A model generated the notes under the pieces. That model was not told the DNA's origin and did no database searches. It saw nothing but the letters and a program-made list of their open reading frames with translations. The position numbers and the translations under genes are program-made. Of a stretch of 64,000 bases of DNA, positions 1 to 11,429 are shown in pieces (position 1 is the stretch's first letter; the number at the start of each line of letters is the position of its first letter). The stretch lies in the IMG/VR virus record IMGVR_UViG_3300029258_002750, positions 186,001 through 250,000 of that record. One strand, given 5' to 3'.

Positions 1-2
1 GC

Positions 3-56
3 TCGCTGAACATCTTCCGCAACCGGCTCAAGACCGCAATTGGAGGACAGTCGTGA
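3..56 (+). CDS. 3' end of an upstream gene (partial, ...SLNIFRNRLKTAIGGQS*)
   Basis: Open frame from the window edge ending in TGA 54-56, overlapping the GTG start of the next gene (GTGA coupling). Confidence 0.4.
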   Translation, partial: SLNIFRNRLKTAIGGQS

Positions 57-607
57 GTTTCTACGATCGCATCGTCGAAGGCGGCGGCTACGACGACCCG
101 CCCGACCTTTCCGAGTTCCAGCGCCAGGTGCTCAGGGCTGCGCGGGCGACGCCCAGCGTGAGTGGCACGGGCCGGTTTATCGGCGGAAAGGCGGCGGGTT
201 CAGTCATCAAGACCATGCGCAAGCAGGGCGTCACCGTGAAGGCGGCGGAGGGCAAGAAGAAGGTAGAGAAGGCGCTCGCCCAGCTCCACAAGCGCGGCCT
301 AGTCTGGACCCGGCGCGAGGGTACCTGGTCCGGCAAGGCAGGTGGCGAGGTCTTCCACACGCGCGTCTCCACGCCATCCGCAACCTCGATCAAGAGGGGC
401 GGCTACGTCGACCTGTTGCTCAAGAAGCTGAAGAAGGCTGGCATCAAGACGGCGACGACGTGCCAGCTCGACTACAGCAAGACCCTGAACCGGCGCGAGG
501 GGATCGGTATGTCCATCGCCGATGTCGTGAAGCTCGCCGCACTTCCGTCCTTCAAGCTCCCGACGAAGGACGAAGCCCGCGCCCACAGGCACGCGAAGGG
601 GAAGTAG
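53..607 (+). CDS. Basic hypothetical protein, candidate internal head protein
   Basis: 184-aa Lys/Arg-rich ORF, GGAGG upstream, coupled to both neighbours. N-terminus MSFYDRIVE resembles the T4 capsid-targeting sequence (MKTYQEFIAE). Confidence 0.7.
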   Translation: MSFYDRIVEGGGYDDPPDLSEFQRQVLRAARATPSVSGTGRFIGGKAAGSVIKTMRKQGVTVKAAEGKKKVEKALAQLHKRGLVWTRREGTWSGKAGGEVFHTRVSTPSATSIKRGGYVDLLLKKLKKAGIKTATTCQLDYSKTLNRREGIGMSIADVVKLAALPSFKLPTKDEARAHRHAKGK

Positions 608-1092
608 TGGTCCCGTACGGTCTGGCAGAAGGAGCGCTCATCTACGCGGCCGATGGTTCGATCATCATGCCAACGTCGATCGAGAAGCTCGCCAAGACCG
701 GGGAGCAGCCCGAGGTTCTCGCCTACCACAAGAAGAAGGACAGGATCGTCAAGGTTGTGGCGCAGTACCCACGGATGGCCAGTACCGAGGCCGAGATCGT
801 GGAGGTGACCCTCTTCAACATGCACAAGCTCCGATGCACGCCGAACCACAAGGTGCTCACGACGGTTGGCCTCATCGAAGCCAGGGACCTGAGGACGGGC
901 GACAAGCTCGTTAGTCCGTCTGCCGGAGCGGGCATTCCCGGCCAGTTCATGTTCACCGCCAACAGGGCCAATCGCGTGGCGGTCGCGGGCGACCCTGTCC
1001 CAGCTGGAAAAGCGCGTGTGTTCGACATCACCACCACGACGGGCAACTTCGTTTGCGAGGGTATCGTCGTCTGCGGCAAGGATGCGAAGTGA
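607..1092 (+). CDS. Free-standing Hint (intein-like) domain protein, splicing residues degenerate
   Basis: GTG at 607 overlaps the upstream TAG. Block A-like GLAEGALIYAADGS, block B LRCTPNHKVLT, blocks F/G VFDITTTTGNFVCEGIVVCG. Has G where Cys1 is expected and CG where His-Asn is expected. Confidence 0.8.
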   Translation: MVPYGLAEGALIYAADGSIIMPTSIEKLAKTGEQPEVLAYHKKKDRIVKVVAQYPRMASTEAEIVEVTLFNMHKLRCTPNHKVLTTVGLIEARDLRTGDKLVSPSAGAGIPGQFMFTANRANRVAVAGDPVPAGKARVFDITTTTGNFVCEGIVVCGKDAK

Positions 1093-1826
1093 GCATTGCG
1101 GGCGACACGGTTATCCACACCCTCACCGGCCCGCAAACCGTCACTCGCATCGCCAACACCGACAAGGCTGTTCACGTCTTCGCCTGGAACGGGGCGAAGA
1201 TCGCGGGCGGCCGGATCTACATTCCGCCGACACCGTGCCGCGCTCAGACGTATCGCGTCGTCCTCGACAACGGCCGCAGCTTGCGGGTCAGCGCCGACCA
1301 GCGCTTCCTGGTATTCACCAAGAGCGAACCGAAGGGCGTTGAGACCGTTCAGGCGATAGACCTCAAGCCGGGCACGAGCCTGCTCCCCCTCTACCTCGGT
1401 CGTATCAAGCAAGGTGGCTATCCGACCTTCAAGCAGGTGGGCGATCATTGGAAGCGATCGGCGTGCGCCAGCGACCGGAAAAGATGGCGGAGCGTCGCTC
1501 GAATGGTGTATGAATGGGCCTCTGGCGACGCTCTCGTTCCTGGGCTTCGGGTGAAGCACAAGGACGGCAATCCTGACAACTGCCACCCCAAGAATCTCTA
1601 CATCGACGGGACCCCACGGCCGGGGAACCGCAGCAAGCTCAATCGTCTTCTCGATCTCCAGAGGAAGATCATGCCAGGCAACCACAAGGTCGCCGGTTGC
1701 GAACCCTGGATCGAAGAGGAAGATGTATACGACGTCCTTCCACAAGACTGCTCGAGCGTTGCGGCGACCGAGGTCTTCTTGGGGGTCGGCGAGGAGACTG
1801 GAGGACTAGATGGCCCTCCGCGATAG
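1089..1826 (+). CDS. Free-standing intein-like protein (Hint + HNH endonuclease domain), splicing residues degenerate
   Basis: GTG at 1089 (GTGA overlap). Block A MSIAGDTVIHTLTG, degenerate block B LRVSADQRF, LKPGTSLLPLY, HNH-like ARMVYEW...VKHKDGNPDNCHPKNL, block F NHKVAGCEPWIEEEDVYDV. No terminal HN. Confidence 0.75.
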   Translation: MSIAGDTVIHTLTGPQTVTRIANTDKAVHVFAWNGAKIAGGRIYIPPTPCRAQTYRVVLDNGRSLRVSADQRFLVFTKSEPKGVETVQAIDLKPGTSLLPLYLGRIKQGGYPTFKQVGDHWKRSACASDRKRWRSVARMVYEWASGDALVPGLRVKHKDGNPDNCHPKNLYIDGTPRPGNRSKLNRLLDLQRKIMPGNHKVAGCEPWIEEEDVYDVLPQDCSSVAATEVFLGVGEETGGLDGPPR

Positions 1827-3711
1827 GGCGGTCAAGGCGCTCCGAAACGTGTTCGGCGCTCCTCAAGCGGAGCGCGCCAAAGCCGACTCGCCCTCGGTCG
1901 CGGCGATGCGGCATCACGTGCCCAGCATGTTCACGGTCTGGGGACGCGAGGACATCGGCGGCCTGCTCACCGTCTCCCAGTCCCTCATGGATCGGTTCGC
2001 CGACTACGAGGCGATGGAGGAGTACCCAGACATCAACTCGGCCTTCCACTACTTCGCTAATGACGCGACTCAGCCCTCGGTCAAGGACGGCCGATGCATC
2101 TGGGTCCAGTCGGAGGACAGTGCGATCAAGGGCCTGGGCGACGACCTGATGCATCGGACGCTGCGGGTCGAGGATGAGATCTGGCCGCAGGCGTACGGTC
2201 TCGGGATGATGGGCAACGACTATCTCGAGCTGCTCATCACCGAGAACGGCGTCGTCGGGACCAACACGCTCCCCGTGCCCACGATGAGGCGCGTCGAGCG
2301 GCTTGACGGCGGCCTGATCGGCTTCGTACAGGACGTGACCGGCCAGTTCACCGCGAACAGCCAAGAGCTGCGGCGGATGCTCGCAGGCAATGTCGAGATC
2401 CCCAGGAGCCTCGCCCTGTTCGAGGACTGGCAGGTCGCCCACTTCCGACTGCGCGCGACGCGGCGGCGCATTCCCTACGGCGTCTCCGTCGCCGAGGGCG
2501 CCCGTTGGATCTGGAAGCGCCTGGTGATGCTCGAGGACAGCGTGCTGATCTACAAGCTCACACGCGCGCCAGCTCGCTACGCCTACTACATCGACACGAC
2601 GGACGTGCCATCCGATCAGGTCGGGTCGTTCCTCCAGAAGGCGAAGAGGGACCTCAAGAAGAAGCGGATGGTCAACCCCCGCTCCGGTCGCCTGGATCTC
2701 CGCTACAACCCGCTGGCGAGAGACGAGGACTTCTTCATCGCCGTTCGCGAGGGCCGCGAGCTGGCCCGGGTGGACGTCCTCTCCGGTCCCGACTACCAGG
2801 CTGTCGATGACGTGGAGTACTTCAAGCAGATGCTCCATGCGACGCTGAAGGTCCCGCGCGCCTACCTCGGCAAGGACGAGGCTCCGCCGTCGAAGTCGAT
2901 CCTCTCGAACGACGACGTGCGGGCGGCCAGGGTGACCTTGAACCTCCAGCGCGAGCTGAAGATCGGCTGGGAGCGGATCATCCGCACGCACCTGGCCGCG
3001 CGAGGCGTGCGCGATCCCTGGAAGCCCGAGTTCACGATCGAGATGACCATTCCTTCGGGGATCTGGGAGCTGTCGGCCTACGAGACCCTCAATGCGGCGG
3101 CCGACTATGCGAGCCGGATCCAGCCGTGGGTCAGTACCCGCTGGATTCAGGAGAAGATCCTCAAGTTCTCGGAGGAGGAGATCAAGGAGATCGAGAAGCA
3201 GCAGAAGAAGGACTCCGAAGAAGAGCAGTCCGGCGACCTGCCCAGCTATGCGATGGGCGGTGCCCAGGGAGGTCCGCCGGAGGCTCCGCCACCTGGCGGG
3301 GAGGAAGAGCCCGAGGAACCCGCGCCCGAGGAGAAGGAGGGCGAGGAGGAAGAGGGGACTCCCAAGCCGAAGCCTGCGCCCAAGCCTGCGCCGAAGCCCA
3401 GGGCTCCTGCGGTCGGGAAGTCGAAGAAGGCGACGCCGGAGGAGATGAAGCGGTGGGACTATGAGCGGCGGCTCGAGGAGTGGAAGTACAGGGAGTCGAA
3501 CCGGCGGCACGCCGAGATCATGGACAAGCTCGGCCAGCTGACAAAGGATGATCCGGGCTTCGCCAGGCGCGATCGGGAGCGCCGTGCGTTCTTCGAGGAC
3601 GTGCGCGGCCTACTCCGGCGAACCAACGGCGGCGGCATCGCTGTACCGCCTGGGGGGAAGTTCTCCCGGAAGGAGCTGCTCTCGATGTCCCGAAGATTCC
3701 ACGGCCGGTAG
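1810..3711 (+). CDS. Portal protein (T4 gp20-like)
   Basis: gp20-family motifs DYEAMEEYPDINSA, LEDSVLIYKLTRAPARYAYYID, YNPLARDEDFFIAVREG. GGAGG RBS. Position before core, protease and capsid genes. Confidence 0.93.
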   Translation: MALRDRAVKALRNVFGAPQAERAKADSPSVAAMRHHVPSMFTVWGREDIGGLLTVSQSLMDRFADYEAMEEYPDINSAFHYFANDATQPSVKDGRCIWVQSEDSAIKGLGDDLMHRTLRVEDEIWPQAYGLGMMGNDYLELLITENGVVGTNTLPVPTMRRVERLDGGLIGFVQDVTGQFTANSQELRRMLAGNVEIPRSLALFEDWQVAHFRLRATRRRIPYGVSVAEGARWIWKRLVMLEDSVLIYKLTRAPARYAYYIDTTDVPSDQVGSFLQKAKRDLKKKRMVNPRSGRLDLRYNPLARDEDFFIAVREGRELARVDVLSGPDYQAVDDVEYFKQMLHATLKVPRAYLGKDEAPPSKSILSNDDVRAARVTLNLQRELKIGWERIIRTHLAARGVRDPWKPEFTIEMTIPSGIWELSAYETLNAAADYASRIQPWVSTRWIQEKILKFSEEEIKEIEKQQKKDSEEEQSGDLPSYAMGGAQGGPPEAPPPGGEEEPEEPAPEEKEGEEEEGTPKPKPAPKPAPKPRAPAVGKSKKATPEEMKRWDYERRLEEWKYRESNRRHAEIMDKLGQLTKDDPGFARRDRERRAFFEDVRGLLRRTNGGGIAVPPGGKFSRKELLSMSRRFHGR

Positions 3712-3723
3712 GCGCAAACCTAG

Positions 3724-3752
3724 TTGCGCAGGATAGATGTAGACCGTAGAAA
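3724..3752 (+). promoter_or_regulatory. Possible sigma70-type promoter (TTGCGC-N17-TAGAAA)
   Basis: Intergenic, 17-nt spacer. The -35 overlaps a GCGCAA/TTGCGC inverted repeat. The -10 lacks the final T. Confidence 0.3.
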
Positions 3753-3773
3753 GTTAGGAAGGGAGCGCCTGTC

Positions 3774-4607
3774 GTGAACGACGCAGCCATCATCAGTCTC
3801 CTGCGCAACGTGAGGCAGGCCGACGACGTCCTCTCGCGTCTGCGGGATGGGTCGCTCGAGGTCCGGCGGGAGCGGATCGCCGAGGCGTTAGCCAGCCCCG
3901 ACTGGGCTGCCGGACCGGCGCAGCTCCTTGCCACGTACCCGCACCACGCGCTCATCGAGAAGAACGACATCCTGATGCGCGTCCGGGTCGAGGAGGAGGA
4001 CGGCAAGATCGAGTTGGGCGAGGTGGAGGTGTTCGACATCCCCGACAAGGTGGGGGATGTCGGTGCCGAGGTCATGGAGACAGCCAAGGCGGCCGTCGAC
4101 CTGATCCTGGCGGACGACTACGACGCTGCGACCCCGCTTGTTGCGGGCATTGCCAACGCGCTCAACTACAAAGGCGATCTCGGCGAGCAGGTCGCGACCG
4201 AAGTGTCCAAGCGTTCCATCCAGCGGGACGCCTGGTGGCACAAGGTCGTGCGCGAGGGAGTCGGCGAGGACGCGCAGATCGAGATCCCTGCTCCTCGCGC
4301 GAACGACCTGCCGGGGAGTATCGACGATCTCCGAGAGGCGCTGACGACGGCCGCGAGGACCGTGGCGGAGGTCGTGCAGCAGATCCCCGGGGAGCGCGCC
4401 ACGAAGGAGATCGTGGAAGCGGCCCGGGACATTGCGGCAGACATGAAGTACGCCATTCAGGCGCTCGGTGCCGCGAGCCGTGACGACGAAGCCGAGCTGG
4501 CAGGCGTCTACGAGGGCGTGTCCGGCATGGCGAGCCACCTTCTGATGGGTGCCAAGTTCCTCGCGAGCCTGGCCGAGCAAGACACCGCGAACGCAACGAA
4601 GGAGTAG
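3774..4607 (+). CDS. Hypothetical protein (head assembly region)
   Basis: 277-aa ORF with genome-typical codon usage, AAGGGAG upstream of GTG. Confidence 0.75.
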   Translation: MNDAAIISLLRNVRQADDVLSRLRDGSLEVRRERIAEALASPDWAAGPAQLLATYPHHALIEKNDILMRVRVEEEDGKIELGEVEVFDIPDKVGDVGAEVMETAKAAVDLILADDYDAATPLVAGIANALNYKGDLGEQVATEVSKRSIQRDAWWHKVVREGVGEDAQIEIPAPRANDLPGSIDDLREALTTAARTVAEVVQQIPGERATKEIVEAARDIAADMKYAIQALGAASRDDEAELAGVYEGVSGMASHLLMGAKFLASLAEQDTANATKE

Positions 4608-4611
4608 GACC

Positions 4612-5862
4612 ATGATGCTGGGAGACCAAGGACCCCAGACTTCGATCGAGGAGGATCTTCAGGCTCTCGGAATGGGTCACCTTCTCGCTGAGGCCGACAC
4701 TTGCCCGTCCAGCAAGGGCGACGGGGATGACGACGACGAGGACGAGGACGAGGGCAAGGAGGAACAGACCGAGGCGCGCGAGTACGACGAGGAGACCGGC
4801 CGTACCGAGATCGAGGTTCGCGCCGAGGACGAGGACGAGTACGAGATCGACGAGGACGAGTTCTTCGAGATCGTCGGCGAGTTCATGGAGTCGCTCGATC
4901 TGGACGAGGACCAGGTCGACGACGCCCTCGAGAGCGAGGAGTTCACGGACATCTTCGTCGAGGCCCTCGTGGCGAACGATGCCCTGGACGAGATCGACGA
5001 GGACGAGGAGGACGAAGAGATCGAGGAGGACGAAGACGAGATCGACGACCCCAGGATGGAGGCCGCTGCCGATCTGCTCGGCCTGTTCTACGATCATCTC
5101 CAGACCATGACCGAGGACGACGACAGGCCCAACTACGACGACCTGGTCGGAGTGATCGAGGCGTTCGAGTACCTCACGGACGGGATCCTCGACGAGACCA
5201 AGCGGACGATGGGTCTCCGCGCCCTCCGCAAGGCCCGCCGGACGAAGAGTCGCCTGGCCAAGCGCGGGAAGATGAAGCGGTCGACCTTCAAGGCCGCGAA
5301 GCGCGGCCGGATGATGATCGGCGGCCACGAGTTCAAGGCCGGTGCCGCGTCCCGCGCCCAGTTCCGCAAGCTGATGCGGAGCGCGAGCCCGAGGCGCCGG
5401 AAGGCCCTCAAGAAGCGGCTCAAGGCTCAGATGGGCGTGACCTCCAAGGACGTCAAGGCCCGGATCACCGGCAAGAAGATGGCAGCCGACGTGGAGCCCC
5501 AGGGCAGCCCGATCTCCGAGCTGGTGCAGCACCTCAACGACCTGCGCGAGGCCGTCCAGAGCGACGACTCCGCCGCCGAGGAGCTGGTCGACGGGCTCAG
5601 GAGCGTCTTCGAGACGGCGACCACCTTCTACGAGCGGATCGCGGAGGAGGTCAGCAGCGACGAGTCGATCGAGGAGGAGGACAAGGAGGACGACCCGCGC
5701 GTGGCGATGGGTCGGCACCTCGAGTCGATCGCCGAGGACTCGGCGGCCGTCGCCCAGCGGATCGTCGAGGGAGAGGCGGACATCAACGACGCGGCCGACG
5801 ACCTGCGCGCCCTGGCGGCGGACCTCGACGATGCGATGGAGGCGATGAAGGGGATCGAGTAG
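4612..5862 (+). CDS. Acidic/basic prohead core protein (T4 gp67/gp68-like position)
   Basis: ATG at 4612 after AAGGAG. Very acidic flanks around a K/R-rich core (LRALRKARRTKSRLAKR...RRRKALKKRLK). Lies between portal and protease like T4 core genes. Confidence 0.6.
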   Translation: MMLGDQGPQTSIEEDLQALGMGHLLAEADTCPSSKGDGDDDDEDEDEGKEEQTEAREYDEETGRTEIEVRAEDEDEYEIDEDEFFEIVGEFMESLDLDEDQVDDALESEEFTDIFVEALVANDALDEIDEDEEDEEIEEDEDEIDDPRMEAAADLLGLFYDHLQTMTEDDDRPNYDDLVGVIEAFEYLTDGILDETKRTMGLRALRKARRTKSRLAKRGKMKRSTFKAAKRGRMMIGGHEFKAGAASRAQFRKLMRSASPRRRKALKKRLKAQMGVTSKDVKARITGKKMAADVEPQGSPISELVQHLNDLREAVQSDDSAAEELVDGLRSVFETATTFYERIAEEVSSDESIEEEDKEDDPRVAMGRHLESIAEDSAAVAQRIVEGEADINDAADDLRALAADLDDAMEAMKGIE

Positions 5863-5915
5863 TCCAGCTGACCTGGTAACCTACTCGCTCAACATCTAGC
5901 CTTACGGAGATACCG

Positions 5916-8747
5916 ATGACGACAAACAGGCGCGTGCTGGTCGACCACTACGGTCCTCCCATGAAGATGCAGATCCTCGAGGGGAAGGACGGCGGCAAGC
6001 TCGTTGTCGAGGGCAAGATCGGCCACGTCGACAAGCCCACGGCGAACAACCGCGTCTACCCCCGCTCGGTCATGGAGAGGGAGATCGGAAGACTCCGGCC
6101 CCGGATCGAGCAGGGGTCCGTCATCGGGGCAGTCGATCATCCCGGTGATGGCAAGTGCCTCGGCCTGGGGACTCCGGTTCTCATGGCCGACGGTCGCGTG
6201 CTCCCGGTCGAGGAGATCGTCACCGGCGACCGCCTCATGGGACCGGATGGCAAGGCGCGGACGGTGCTGGCGACGACCGCTGGCACCGGCCCGCTCTACC
6301 GGGTTGACCCCAAGAAGGGCGATCCGTGGGTCTGCAACGACAAGCACGTCCTGACGCTGGTCCACACGTCCAACGGCGAGGTCGTGGACATCCCGGTCGA
6401 GGACTACCTCGACAAGAGCATCTACTACAAGAGCCGCTACAAGCTGTTCAGCACCGGCGTCGAGCGGTTCGAGGACGAGGCCGAGCCGCCCAGCGTCGAT
6501 CCCTACTTCCTGGGCGCCTGGTTCGGTGATGGTTCCAAGACGAAGATCAACTTCGTCGCGCCCGAGACGATGGGTCTGTCGGCTGTGCGCGCTGTGGCGA
6601 TCACGACCATCGACCCGGAGATCCGGGAGATGTGCGAGGACATCGCCGCCAAGTGGGAGGTTCGCGTCAACGAGGTTCCCAAGACCACGGGGACCGAGGC
6701 CGTCACGCTCTACCTGTCCACTGACAAGGGGCAGGACAACCGCCTGCTCCGCGCTGTGCGCGATCTCGTCGGGCCGGACATGCGCGTTCCCGATCAGATC
6801 GTGCGCGGGAGCCGCGAGACCCGTCTCCAGTTCCTCGCCGGTCTGATCGACACCGACGGGCATCTCCAGCACAACTGCTTCTACATCACCCAGAAGCGCG
6901 CCGACTACGCACAGGTCGCGCACCGGATCGCCAAGTCGCTCGGCTTCCAGGCCGTGCTCTCCACGCGCAAGGTGCAGGGCTACAGCGACGACTACCACAC
7001 GCTCACCATCTGGGGCGACGTGGAGCAGATCCCGACCCGTCTGGAGCGCAAGAAGGCCGAGCTGCGCGAGCAGCGGAAGGACGCGCTCAGGACCGGGTTT
7101 ATCGTCACGCCCATCGGAACCGGCGACTACGCCGGGTTCGAGCTGGACGGCGACGGTCGGTTCCTGCTGGGCGACTTCACCGTCAGCCACAACAGCCGGA
7201 TCCGGGAGGGTGGCTGCATCGTCCGAGGTCTCTGGATCGAGGACGATGGCACGATCAACGGCAAGTTCGAGGTCGTTGAGGAGGCCGACGCGGGTCGCAA
7301 CCTCGCCGCGTTCCTGCGGCGGGGTGCGGCCATCGGCATGTCCAGCCGGGGCATGGGTTCCACGTCCACCGGCCCCCAGGGCTGGGACGTGGTCGGCGAG
7401 GACTTCAAGCTCAACACGTGGGACTTCGTGGCCGATCCGGCCTGCCACGACGCCTACCCGTCCGTGATCTCCGAGGACGTGGACGGCGAGGGCAAGCCCA
7501 CCGGCAAGCTCGTGGTCAACCCCGAGGAGGTCAACGAGACGGTGCTGCGGCAGCACTTCCCCGACGCGGTTCGCGTGATCGAGCAGCACGCGATGCGCGT
7601 GGCCTCGGAGACGGCGGCCGAGGACGCCGACGACCGGGTCAACGGCGAGGTCGAGTCCCAGAAGGAGGAGATCTACAAGAAGGCGATCGACGAGCTGCGC
7701 GAGGACTTCGCGGCCAAGCTCGTCCGCGCGCTGGCCGAGATGCGCACGAAGGTCGAGGAGGACGTCCGCAGCGACTTCGCGAGCGACCCCGAGACGGCTG
7801 GCGCCAAGCTGGCCCTCAAGAAGATCGCCGAGATGGTCAACCCCTATGCCCCGTCGCCGGACGAGAAGAAGGTCTTGGACGAGAAGGACGCCAAGATCGA
7901 GGAGCTGTCCCAGGCAGCGGACGAGCAGGAGAAGAAGGCCCGCGATGCCGAGCTGCGCGTCGTCCGCGTCGAGGAGAAGACGCGCGAGCTGGCCTTCCAG
8001 CTCTACGTCGAGCAGATGATCGGCGGTCGCGAGGACCGCGAGAACGTCCGCGACCTGATCGGCGACCTCTCCGCGTGCAAGAACGCCGAGGAGCTGAAGA
8101 CGCGAGTCGAGTCTGCGCTGACCTCGATCGAGGAAGCCCAGATGTCGGCGAAGAACGAAGCGAACGAGGAGGCCGAGGCTGCGATCCGGCTCGCGGAGGA
8201 GCGAGCGAGCGACGCCGAGATCGCGCTTGCCCAGGCGGAGGCACGCGAGAAGCGCTACCGCGCCGAGGTCACCAAGCGGTTCGAGGCTCTGGAGTCCCAG
8301 CTGACCTCGGCCATCGAGAGCAAGGACGAGGAGATCGGTGCGGCCCGTGCCCGTATCGAGGAGCAGGCCGACATGCTGGAGCGGGCGGTCACCGCAGGCA
8401 CCCGCGCGAAGCTCCTGGCCTACGCGAGCGACCGCACGGTCGGTCACCCGCACCGCGACGCGATCATGGAGGACGTGAAGAACGACGAGCTGACGTCCAT
8501 CAAGGAGATCGATGCTCGCGCTTCCGAGACCGAGCGTCGAGCGCAGGAGCCGGGCGGCCCGATGGAGCGGGTGCGCCGGTCCATGAGTGCCGGTCGCGAG
8601 CACATCACCGAGGACGAGCGACGCGCGTTCGAGGCGAGCGAGAACCAAGGTTTCGTCGGTGGGGACGATGCTTCCCGGGACCTGGAGTACCTGGGAACGT
8701 CCTTGACCGAGCAGCAGCGCTTGGCCGGGAGGACCCGGCGAGCTTGA
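5916..8747 (+). CDS. Prohead protease (T4 gp21-like) with intein, fused to a C-terminal coiled-coil scaffold (gp22-like)
   Basis: TANNRVYPRSVMEREI, GAVDHP (catalytic His), AIGMSSRGMGS (catalytic Ser), WDFVADPA. Long E/A/K/R-rich C-terminal region. Directly upstream of the capsid gene. Confidence 0.9.
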   Translation: MTTNRRVLVDHYGPPMKMQILEGKDGGKLVVEGKIGHVDKPTANNRVYPRSVMEREIGRLRPRIEQGSVIGAVDHPGDGKCLGLGTPVLMADGRVLPVEEIVTGDRLMGPDGKARTVLATTAGTGPLYRVDPKKGDPWVCNDKHVLTLVHTSNGEVVDIPVEDYLDKSIYYKSRYKLFSTGVERFEDEAEPPSVDPYFLGAWFGDGSKTKINFVAPETMGLSAVRAVAITTIDPEIREMCEDIAAKWEVRVNEVPKTTGTEAVTLYLSTDKGQDNRLLRAVRDLVGPDMRVPDQIVRGSRETRLQFLAGLIDTDGHLQHNCFYITQKRADYAQVAHRIAKSLGFQAVLSTRKVQGYSDDYHTLTIWGDVEQIPTRLERKKAELREQRKDALRTGFIVTPIGTGDYAGFELDGDGRFLLGDFTVSHNSRIREGGCIVRGLWIEDDGTINGKFEVVEEADAGRNLAAFLRRGAAIGMSSRGMGSTSTGPQGWDVVGEDFKLNTWDFVADPACHDAYPSVISEDVDGEGKPTGKLVVNPEEVNETVLRQHFPDAVRVIEQHAMRVASETAAEDADDRVNGEVESQKEEIYKKAIDELREDFAAKLVRALAEMRTKVEEDVRSDFASDPETAGAKLALKKIAEMVNPYAPSPDEKKVLDEKDAKIEELSQAADEQEKKARDAELRVVRVEEKTRELAFQLYVEQMIGGREDRENVRDLIGDLSACKNAEELKTRVESALTSIEEAQMSAKNEANEEAEAAIRLAEERASDAEIALAQAEAREKRYRAEVTKRFEALESQLTSAIESKDEEIGAARARIEEQADMLERAVTAGTRAKLLAYASDRTVGHPHRDAIMEDVKNDELTSIKEIDARASETERRAQEPGGPMERVRRSMSAGREHITEDERRAFEASENQGFVGGDDASRDLEYLGTSLTEQQRLAGRTRRA
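6156..7193 (+). mobile_element. Intein with LAGLIDADG homing endonuclease (346 aa) in the prohead protease
   Basis: Starts CLGLGTPVLMADG and ends GDFTVSHN followed by Ser(+1). LAGLIDADG motifs YFLGAWFGDGS and FLAGLIDTDG. Confidence 0.95.
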
Positions 8748-10240: not shown

Positions 10241-10278
10241 GGAGGGGCGACGGTTTCGGCCGTCGCCCCTTCTGCTTG
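10241..10278 (+). terminator. Stem-loop with UUCG loop after the capsid gene
   Basis: GGAGGGGCGACGGT-TTCG-GCCGTCGCCCCTTC (14 bp, two G-U pairs) followed by a weak U tract (TGCTT). Confidence 0.7.
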
Positions 10279-10304
10279 TGAAGCGTCGAGCGCCGATCTA
10301 TATT
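10276..10304 (+). promoter_or_regulatory. sigma70-type promoter for the HNH gene (TTGTGA-N17-TATATT)
   Basis: Near-consensus hexamers, 17-nt spacer, GGAGG RBS and GTG start downstream. Confidence 0.6.
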
Positions 10305-10322
10305 AGTTGGTGGAGGTTCGCT

Positions 10323-11429
10323 GTGCCCACCAACTACCCCAAGTTCTCGCCGCGCGACCTGGAGCGATGGAACCAGAAGATCGAGCCCTCGGCCGTAGAC
10401 CGGCTTGCCGCTCCAGACGCCTGCGTCCTGTGGACGGCGAGCAAGAACGCGCGCGGCTATGGCGTCTTCAGGCTGGACAACCGCTCTCTGCTCGCCCACC
10501 GGGTGGCCTATGTACAGGCGAACGGTCAGATCCCGGACGGCGCGCTCGTGCGGCACACATGCGACGACCCGGCCTGCGTGAACCCACGACACCTGGTTCT
10601 CGGCACGCCAGCTGACAACTCGGCCGACATGGTTGAGCGCGGCCGATTCGCGGACCAGAGTGGGGAGAAGAACGGTCGCGCCAAACTCGACTGGGCGAAG
10701 GTGGACGAGATCCGCGCCCGGCTGGAAGCGGGGGAGTCCCAACGGGCACTGGCCGAGGAGTTCGGCGTCAGCCAGCCTCACCTGTCGGACATCAAGCTGG
10801 GACGGACCTGGCAGCGGCAGGACGTACCAGTGGTGCCGAAGAAGGCGCGATCGGATCGCGGGAAGAGGAGACGCGGCAGGAGCAGTCCGATCGAGGCAGA
10901 TGAGAAGACAACCAGGCGCTTCTGGAAGAAGGTCGCCAAGGCCGGACCCGACGACTGCTGGGAGTGGCAGGCCGCGAAGGACAGCTCGGGCTACGGCGCC
11001 TTCAACATCTGCGGCCGGGTCCGGGGCGCCCACCTGGTCTCCTACCTGATCGCCAACGGCAAGATGGCTGAGAACGACGTCGCCCACACCTGCGCGAACC
11101 GCGCCTGCGTGAACCCAGCTCACCTGAAGGACACGACCCGCACCAGCAACATGCAGAACCCGGAGACCCGCCGCCGGATCTCGAAGAAGGCGCGCGGCGG
11201 CCGGAGGAACACGAAGCTGACGGACGAGCAGATCAGGTTCGTCAAAGAACGGTTCAGGGACGACAAGCTACTCTCAGCTCGTAAGCTCGCCGACGAGCTG
11301 GGCAACGTGGTCACGCCCGAGTGCCTGGCCAACATCCGCAAGGGCAAGACCGGCCGCCACGTGAAGGTCCCTGGGTTCAGGGCGCGGAAGGTGACTCCGA
11401 AGCGGGCGGCGGCGATGAGGGCTTGTTAG
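10323..11429 (+). CDS. Free-standing homing endonuclease with two tandem HNH + HTH units
   Basis: Two CxxW...GYGxF...AHxVxY...HTCxNxxCVNPxHL units, each followed by a KLxxxxVxxIR HTH-like segment. GTG start at 10323 after GGAGG. Confidence 0.9.
   Translation: MPTNYPKFSPRDLERWNQKIEPSAVDRLAAPDACVLWTASKNARGYGVFRLDNRSLLAHRVAYVQANGQIPDGALVRHTCDDPACVNPRHLVLGTPADNSADMVERGRFADQSGEKNGRAKLDWAKVDEIRARLEAGESQRALAEEFGVSQPHLSDIKLGRTWQRQDVPVVPKKARSDRGKRRRGRSSPIEADEKTTRRFWKKVAKAGPDDCWEWQAAKDSSGYGAFNICGRVRGAHLVSYLIANGKMAENDVAHTCANRACVNPAHLKDTTRTSNMQNPETRRRISKKARGGRRNTKLTDEQIRFVKERFRDDKLLSARKLADELGNVVTPECLANIRKGKTGRHVKVPGFRARKVTPKRAAAMRAC

Follow-up and report, generated by a model that had tools for sequence, protein, structure and literature searches.

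To our knowledge, inteins are regarded as able to persist only within host proteins, the HO and WHO genes of yeast being the one well-known exit. Both are intein-derived, free-standing genes that unite a Hint domain with a homing endonuclease; the WHO genes lie directly beside their target gene and drive the inheritance of the linked allele, and HO represents the domesticated end point (Coughlan et al. 2020, eLife 9:e55336, as cited in PMC10448857). Here we describe a gene of comparable build, P0001, found in 64,000 nucleotides of viral DNA (the window: bases 186,001-250,000 of the 275,101-bp IMG/VR record IMGVR_UViG_3300029258_002750; positions are in window numbering unless another contig is named). 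The ends of the record are direct terminal repeats, indicating a large phage. P0001 encodes a Hint-HNH protein, stands immediately before the T4-type portal gene P0003 and follows a free-standing mini-Hint gene, P0002. Our preferred reading, to which we give a probability of about 0.6, is that P0001 is an escaped portal intein that now acts as a predicted site-specific DNA binder (a nickase if its catalytic triad is intact) aimed at the 5' region of the portal gene, where in mixed infections it would bias the inheritance of its own gene and of the portal segment linked to it.

Like HO and WHO, P0001 combines Hint and endonuclease domains in an independent gene of apparent intein origin. The yeast genes differ in being eukaryotic, in carrying a LAGLIDADG endonuclease with a zinc finger and in lying downstream of FBA1, whereas P0001 belongs to a phage, has an HNH_3 module without any LAGLIDADG or zinc-finger match, lies upstream of a portal gene and still has in-frame sister inteins in the gene that it abuts. 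HO and WHO are the closest analogue of P0001, and the likeness would be one of convergence, an analogy and not homology. In the collaborative homing of phages, a group I intron without an endonuclease of its own is paired with a free-standing one (cyanophage psbA/F-CphI; T3/T7-like phages) (PMC10448857, PMC2790892). The resemblance lies in a free nuclease gene beside a gene with a nuclease-less self-splicing element, a few hundred bp apart and co-inherited; the known cases use an intron, whereas here the element is a mini-intein, the free nuclease would itself be a former intein and, in the window, the mini-intein lies outside the target gene. MobE of T4 is a free-standing HNH gene shown experimentally to support trans-homing of the defunct I-TevIII (PMC2790892); as a free HNH gene in a T4-type phage that mobilises a neighbouring element unable to move alone it resembles the proposed P0001, from which it differs in having neither a Hint domain nor intein ancestry. 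Collaborative homing and MobE are the closest phage precedents for a free nuclease beside a nuclease-less splicing element; both rely on introns and on nucleases of other than intein descent.

The in-frame HNH inteins of phages (Dalgaard et al. 1997, as cited in 10.1101/2025.01.02.630785) share with P0001 the order N-Hint, HNH, C-Hint, the sequence family and the SLMPLY and NHKV motifs; unlike them, P0001 has neither exteins nor splicing residues. I-HmuI (PDB 1u3e), the nicking homing endonuclease of SPO1, shares an H-N-N type HNH module with the P0001 family, but it is intron-encoded, uses other DNA-binding modules, has no Hint fold and, in front of the catalytic His, shows Asp instead of the Lys of P0001. 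In fractured genes, a free-standing endonuclease gene lies between the halves of a split intein (Dassa et al. 2009, PMC2677866); these too occur in a metagenomic, phage-like context with intein parts and endonuclease genes as separate open reading frames (ORFs), but there the split intein still trans-splices and the endonuclease is not Hint-derived, whereas at the P0001 locus nothing is split and nothing splices. Full-text literature searches found no description of a gene like P0001.

The marks by which a preliminary description of this DNA had recognised an intein-derived gene were all found. P0001 starts at Ser in block A (M/V-SIAGDTVI, residues 1-9), contains LKPGTSLLPLY (residues 92-102) and an HNH-like segment (H157...N169), has a degenerate block B (S68-A-D-Q71, no His) and keeps blocks F and G (VYDV, residues 213-216; EVFLGV, residues 228-233), the terminal His-Asn being missing. 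Furthermore, it does overlap the portal start, by 17 nt, its stop codon (1824-1826) lying beyond the portal ATG at 1810, and the portal is free of inteins as had been stated, a Pfam search giving no Hint match in P0003. As a single sequence, P0001 matches Pfam HNH_3 at E 4.6e-4 on residues 138-170 (20.2 bits against a gathering cut-off of 24.8), Intein_splicing at E 2.6e-3 and several HNH endonuclease families of PHROGs at ~1e-4. Ten homologues of equal length, 34-85 % identical, were obtained by a word-based search. The profile built from these ten reached DnaE inteins on its N- and C-terminal parts (E 5.7e-6) and I-HmuI on its middle (E 0.044), and a profile of 44 sequences reached the same targets at E 1.8e-8 for both intein parts and at E 0.015 for I-HmuI. 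The N-terminal lobe aligned to residues 5-91 of the DnaE intein, the C-terminal lobe to the DnaE C-intein, and positions 125-200 of the family profile to I-HmuI residues 51-121. A PDB search with the HNH part alone as a single sequence gave no match, I-HmuI being reached by the family profile only. HNH_3 itself is matched by 33 of the 44 family members at E <= 0.01 (best 5.3e-9).

The AlphaFold2 model of P0001 (predicted local distance difference test, pLDDT, 78.7; predicted template modelling score, pTM, 0.73) displays a Hint fold with an inserted module, with pLDDT values of 82-93 in the N-terminal lobe and 90-92 for residues 201-230. A Foldseek search with this model ranked the Ssp DnaB, DnaE, RadA and GyrA inteins at the top, with E down to 4e-7 and template modelling (TM) scores by target of 0.65-0.76, in alignments that span ~240 columns and both Hint lobes. 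According to the model, P0001 is a complete Hint fold with a predicted I-HmuI/HNH_3-type module at the usual endonuclease insertion point; judged by its sequence matches, it is a divergent, putative HNH_3-type protein.

The HNH segment reads V-K-H157-K-D159-G-N-P-D-N164-C-H-P-K-N169-L and keeps His157 as general base and both Asn of the H-N-N motif, Asn164 and Asn169. Among the 44 free-standing representatives, N169 is present in all, N164 in 40, D159 in 39 and H157 in 30. Over the same set, position 1 is Ser, Ala, Gly, Thr or a gap, with a single Cys, and neither the block-B His nor the terminal His-Asn occurs in any. In P0001 the splicing determinants are gone: Ser2 has no preceding peptide bond to attack, block B reads SADQ, and Gly-Val stands in place of His-Asn. 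Exteins are missing as well, the start codon lying directly before block A, the stop 12 residues past block G and the neighbouring genes in other frames. P0001 is not an intein, since in-frame insertion, splicing residues and exteins are all absent. At the start of the C-terminal Hint lobe, the dipeptide N198-H199 (..NHKV..) is invariant in 44/44 free-standing representatives, and so is P100 of ..SLMPLY..; both are also found in in-frame HNH inteins, and their conservation exceeds that of the catalytic His157. A bacterial intein-like (BIL) or pretoxin Hint identity was rejected for P0001, which has no flanking domains and no conserved terminal residues and does not match PT-HINT.

An exhaustive profile search over 1.84 billion cluster representatives returned 3551 matches at E <= 1e-3 and 1324 at E <= 1e-10. 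The best 150, on which the breakdown by type is based, comprise 40 free-standing proteins (185-266 residues), 3 free-standing proteins with a nested mini-intein and 107 long proteins (811-2930 residues) with one to several in-frame copies. The preliminary description had pointed to HNH inteins in portal and terminase genes of large phages, and indeed 79 of these 107 long proteins are recognisably T4-type portals; the other host proteins sampled were ThyX, a ResIII/DEAD helicase and other portal types, and a terminase host was not confirmed. In every locus with context, down to ~30 % identity to P0001, the free-standing gene directly precedes the portal start. Its conserved position and the purifying selection detailed below bear out the earlier view that the gene persists and is not debris; nor is it a unique and decayed copy, with 43 free-standing relatives in the best 150 and a ratio of nonsynonymous to synonymous substitution rates (dN/dS) of 0.18. 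The family is absent from 50,697 GenBank phage records, where tblastn of P0001 gave only a 27 % intein match in a cyanophage dCTP deaminase gene. Megablast of window positions 1-6000 against 50,697 phage records gave no match, and the nearest cultured portal is 31 % identical.

An indication of where P0001 comes from lies in the portal gene itself. In four relatives (P0090, P0064, P0048 and P0037) a full-length homologue of P0001 occurs as a genuine intein in the portal, at ..ADYE|C...HN|SM(D/N)(D/E)YP.. (between codons 67 and 68; site a), with Cys1, an intact block B (..GNH.. or ..PDH..) and a ..THN end followed by Ser. In a FastTree phylogeny of 213 profile-aligned copies, the 50 free-standing ones all fall into a single clade (0.952), whose sisters are these four site-a inteins (joint clade 0.998), the HNH inteins of a second portal site (codon 76/77; site b) coming next. 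IQ-TREE (LG+C20, 73 rows, an independent MAFFT alignment; the trees use 170-190 columns) recovered the free-standing clade at 100/98 and its union with the site-a inteins at 100/99, made the site-a inteins paraphyletic to the free-standing clade and again placed the site-b portal HNH inteins as next outgroups. Furthermore, portals with a site-a intein have no free-standing gene upstream (L017-L019, L036 and L037 included), site a is empty in genomes with the free-standing gene, and both forms were found together in none of the loci inspected. Given this monophyly, the site-a sisters and the mutual exclusivity, a single relocation with loss of every splicing residue is the simplest reading, and it is very likely that P0001 originated as an escaped portal intein, much as the preliminary description had supposed in speaking of an intein free-standing next to its target gene. 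To test for escape by unequal recombination, a sensitive profile was used to look upstream of the free-standing genes for leftovers of portal codons 1-67; only true portal starts came up.

The course of events that we propose begins with an ancestral Hint-HNH intein in-frame between codons 67 and 68 of a T4-type portal gene. Early in a large uncultured clade of big phages it would have been relocated once, to just before the portal start codon, becoming an independent, translationally coupled gene and losing all protein-splicing residues. The Hint fold would have been kept, most likely as a DNA-contacting scaffold, as already in intein endonucleases, together with the I-HmuI-like HNH module. 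P0001 would recognise DNA in the 5' part of the portal gene, at the ancestral homing site some 200 bp from its own stop, and copies with His157, Asn164 and Asn169, as here, would nick or cut the alleles of relatives infecting the same cell. The ensuing repair would carry over both the endonuclease gene and the linked portal 5' region, as in yeast WHO elements and collaborative homing. The partner would be the endonuclease-less mini-intein that normally lies 27 bp from the ancestral site and that appears in the window as the free-standing, splicing-dead P0002. The fold, the lost motifs, the conserved position, the monophyly with its sister group, the mutual exclusivity with the portal intein, the purifying selection and the constant presence of the mini-intein are observed; which way the relocation went, whether the protein binds DNA at the portal locus, and whether it cleaves or drives, are matters that we infer. 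If the proposal holds, the locus would be a second, independent exit of an intein, in a bacteriophage and with a different class of nuclease. Intact inteins at codon 67/68, the putative donor state, and free genes 200 bp upstream, the derived state, both survive in sister lineages, and such natural sequence pairs would make it testable how a splicing element and its endonuclease part and how a selfish nuclease turns into a resident gene. The mini-intein in its four alternative positions, with portals holding up to seven inteins, would provide a natural series for the mobility of nuclease-less inteins, and Hint-HNH proteins of ~230 residues could supply compact site-specific DNA binders or nickases.

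The companion gene product P0002 matches Intein_splicing at 1.5e-9, above the Pfam cut-off. It has Gly at the place of Cys1 and Cys-Gly at that of His-Asn and keeps the T..H of block B; by these residues it is a splicing-dead copy of an endonuclease-less mini-intein. Indeed, it is homologous to the mini-inteins at portal codon 76/77 and 41-45 % identical to mini-inteins, with 41 % (9e-29) to one nested in P0012. A free-standing mini-Hint was found in only 4 other clusters, all of P0002's lineage and all with Gly for Cys1 and Cys-Gly or Ser-Ala for His-Asn. The arrangement of the two elements was surveyed in 39 IMG/VR portal loci and other contigs, a few dozen loci out of thousands of matches, all relatives being metagenomic. 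State A, with more than 20 loci, has a free Hint-HNH gene and a mini-intein in the portal at ..YPDIN|C...VVHN|S.. (codon 76/77). In state B both elements are in-frame in the portal, eight or nine codons apart (L017, L019, L035-L037) or nested (L018/P0037), and in state C the mini-intein lies within the free Hint-HNH gene and the portal is without it (L005/L006, L040). State D, in which the mini-Hint and the Hint-HNH genes are both free and the portal contains neither, was seen only in this window and its 85 % relatives, and state E, with neither element, in distant portals of 39-45 % identity.

Hint-HNH without the mini-intein was encountered in 0 loci, the mini-intein being in one of four places. 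The suggestion that the two tandem genes form a system has its factual basis in this constant co-occurrence, which may reflect function, or shared descent with tight linkage. As to conservation of a Hint pair upstream of the portal, the Hint-HNH gene is conserved there, and both genes are free only in the window and its 85 % relatives. The nested arrangements take several forms: at L018:747-4220 (P0037) the mini-intein sits in the site-a Hint-HNH intein of the portal, an intein within an intein, and in the free Hint-HNH gene it is found at two sites, in the HNH motif (..DRHN|C.., P0012) and near the C-terminus (P0043, P0050, L040).

Selection was estimated against the 85 % relative L004, with dN/dS values of 0.05-0.07 for the portal, 0.18 for P0001 and 0.49 for P0002, the last departing from 1 at p = 7e-4. 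In-frame mini-inteins mostly lie at 0.04-0.31 (one pair at 0.50), and P0002 is relaxed against most of them. The synonymous rate (dS) is ~0.43-0.47 in the portal and P0001 and 0.53 in P0002; this uniformity across the locus indicates that P0001, P0002 and the portal diverged together and gives no hint that the window and L004 have recently exchanged sequence by gene conversion. Across P0001 family comparisons dN/dS is 0.08-0.26. The Hint-HNH gene diverges much faster than the portal, for example to 49 % identity where the portals are 95 % identical.

Several observations weigh against reading P0001 as an escaped intein that still biases inheritance. The trees are unrooted, and it is the outgroup inteins and the parsimony of splicing-motif loss that give the step from intein to free gene its direction. 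I-HmuI, the HNH domain of Cas9 and most His-Me nucleases have a metal-binding Asp or His just before the general base; P0001 has Lys156 there, and the family Arg, Glu, Ser or Lys. His157 itself gives way to Phe, Tyr or Leu in 14 of the 44 representatives and, among 22 distinct IMG/VR copies, in 10 (its equivalent is missing in two of the four site-a inteins too), and dN/dS of the His-less copies is 0.10-0.26, the same range as for His-bearing ones, dS being saturated in most such pairs. Selection on these copies suggests that something besides canonical HNH catalysis is selected in a large part of the family. Moreover, in a coarse test over 15 distinct state-A loci, the Hint-HNH gene, the mini-intein and the portal extein rise and fall together in pairwise identity (r ~0.9), and no pair among these loci suggests recent horizontal transfer. 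No empty target allele was seen among related portals of >= 48 % identity with the 5' end present, each having either the free gene or a site-a intein. Both ancestral portal sites are uninterrupted in the window, and an active enzyme with the ancestral specificity would need other self-protection. At the population level, the P0001 family shows neither the sporadic presence nor the incongruent phylogeny that mark a typical free-standing homing endonuclease gene. With His lost under selection, the gene fixed in the clade and its divergence in step with that of the portal, the family does not look like a homing endonuclease in active invasion; the picture suits an element that has come to the end of its homing cycle and is retained, or one that is domesticated.

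A possible alternative, though a clearly less probable one, keeps the escaped-intein origin and has the Hint-HNH protein domesticated, retained for a nuclease-independent job rather than for homing. It might bind DNA site-specifically at the head-gene locus, as a regulator or to protect the portal site from related inteins, or it might work together with the free mini-Hint protein. The absence of the catalytic His from a third to half of the lineages under unchanged purifying selection, the Lys at the metal-ligand position in P0001, the co-divergence with the portal and the fixation across the clade all point this way, as do the constraint that remains on the free mini-Hint after losing its splicing residues and the making of both free proteins in every clade genome, spliced out where they are inteins and directly translated in the window. 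For the family as a whole, His loss under selection and portal co-divergence lean towards a domesticated Hint protein over an active homing endonuclease. This has to be set against the continued conservation of Asn169, Asn164 and Asp159 at the frequencies given above, the His157 that P0001 itself keeps, the saturated dS behind most His-less comparisons and the fast protein divergence, which would suit a selfish element too; nor can a function be named for such a protein from its sequence. It is doubtful that the free Hint-HNH and the free mini-Hint make up a two-protein unit that serves the phage itself and needs neither splicing nor canonical HNH catalysis. Such a unit could bind DNA site-specifically at the head-gene locus, excluding or resisting the portal inteins of related phages, and would mean that inteins had been domesticated in a virus. 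The predicted complex of P0001 and P0002 had an interaction prediction score from aligned errors (ipSAE) of 0.00 in a run without controls, which speaks neither for nor against binding.

As for the escape of P0001 from the portal, the reverse direction, in which an older free-standing Hint-HNH gene invaded the adjacent portal and gave rise to the site-a inteins, is very unlikely. Unrooted trees would allow it, the site-a inteins are few (4 representatives) and nearest to the free-standing clade, and free-standing endonucleases have been proposed to invade inteins (10.1101/2025.01.02.630785); it is nevertheless implausible because four splicing determinants (Cys1, the block-B His, the terminal His-Asn and the +1 Ser) would have to be regained at once and in frame, and it sits badly with the paraphyly of the site-a inteins inside the strongly joined clade, with the in-frame portal inteins that follow as next outgroups and with a wider family made up wholly of in-frame inteins. 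Still less likely is a packaging-associated HNH protein like HK97 gp74, of a class discussed in PMC10448857 and PMC3592412, that would assist terminase cleavage beside the portal and terminase genes: the portal adjacency, the HNH motif and the conserved position would agree with it, but a terminase gene is adjacent in none of the loci inspected, the family is HNH_3/I-HmuI-like within a Hint fold, unlike the zinc-ribbon and PF01844 types, many members do without the catalytic His, and the record has direct terminal repeats, not cos ends. Least likely of all is a decaying remnant, a dead intein fragment awaiting deletion, which the loss of all splicing residues and the weak Pfam matches of P0001 might suggest but which the intact, constant-length ORFs in 43 of the best 150 representatives, the family's low dN/dS, the conserved position and the translational coupling contradict.

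The escaped-intein candidate P0001 is one of four genes that lie head to tail on the + strand at the left end of the window, their stops and starts overlapping or abutting (Table 1). It starts with GTG, 6 nt downstream of an AAGGA Shine-Dalgarno sequence, and stops with TAG; a Shine-Dalgarno-like purine run stands before each of the four genes, and no promoter-like or terminator-like sites were found between orfX, P0002, P0001 and P0003. Site a lies ~200 bp downstream of the P0001 stop and site b 27 bp from site a.

Table 1. Genes, protein parts and empty intein sites at the left end of the window.
Feature	Position	Strand	Description
orfX	53..607	+	184 aa, opens the tightly coupled run orfX / mini-Hint / Hint-HNH / portal
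P0002, mini-Hint	607..1092	+	161 aa, free-standing; 4-nt overlap with the P0001 start
P0001, Hint-HNH	1089..1826	+	245 aa, apparently intein-derived, without exteins
P0001, N-terminal Hint lobe	1089..1403	+	residues 1-105; Ser2 at the Cys1 place, block B SADQ without His, SLLPLY motif
P0001, predicted HNH_3 / I-HmuI-like beta-beta-alpha-metal module	1461..1613	+	residues 125-175; H157, D159, N164, N169; K156
P0001, C-terminal Hint lobe	1677..1787	+	residues 197-233; N198-H199, block F VYDV, block G EVFLGV, no terminal His-Asn
P0003, T4-type portal	1810..3711	+	633 aa, Portal_T4 E 4.9e-51, intein-free
Empty site a, portal codons E67|A68	2008..2013	+	junction bases 2010|2011; sister-group Hint-HNH inteins inserted here in relatives (..ADYE|C...THN|SM..)
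Empty site b, portal codons N76|S77	2035..2040	+	P0002-type mini-intein here in most relatives (..YPDIN|C...VVHN|S..)

The first gene of the run, orfX, has no Pfam or PHROGs family match. It is conserved in L004 at 66 % identity with a dN/dS of 0.32, and its dS of 0.95 is about twice that of the three downstream genes.

The portal relatives of P0003 carry 1-7 inteins in their gene. Metagenomic T4-type portals of 1,000-2,930 residues (among P0027-P0164; e.g. L054, L055 and L061) contain 3-7 Hint or Hint-HNH inteins, at recurrent sites that read ..RYADYE|C, ..YPDIN|C, ..LRYNPL|C and ..YDExx|C or that follow ..SILSN. Some of the portal intein copies begin with Leu-Pro or Pro, not Cys (..SWVRN|LPV.., ..LRYNPL|PV..), and may be class-3-like inteins. 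At L004:6722-9964 (also in L011, L012, L031 and L032) the portal reaches 1080 residues through a LAGLIDADG intein of ~445 residues at ..IYKL|C...VVHN|TRAPARY..; the corresponding site (codon 250/251) is empty in the portal of the window, and dS around it is uniform, giving no sign of a recent conversion tract.

The same phage carries further inteins and several more HNH_3 genes unrelated to Hint. A prohead protease gene (Peptidase_S77) at 5916-8747 (+) holds a LAGLIDADG intein (Hom_end_hint 1e-12, Hom_end, LAGLIDADG_3) at ..DHPGDGK|C...VSHN|S.., and a 383-residue ORF at ~10278-11429 (+) has two HNH_3 domains (E 2e-14 and 4e-6). The terminase families PF03237 and PF17289 of Pfam gave no match in the 275-kb record, where the terminase may be too divergent or interrupted. 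Outside the window, an additional HNH_3 gene lies at G000:C1:93929-94060 (-), and an Intein_splicing match at G000:C1:42281-42628 (+), within an open frame of 982 residues, points to at least one further intein in the genome.

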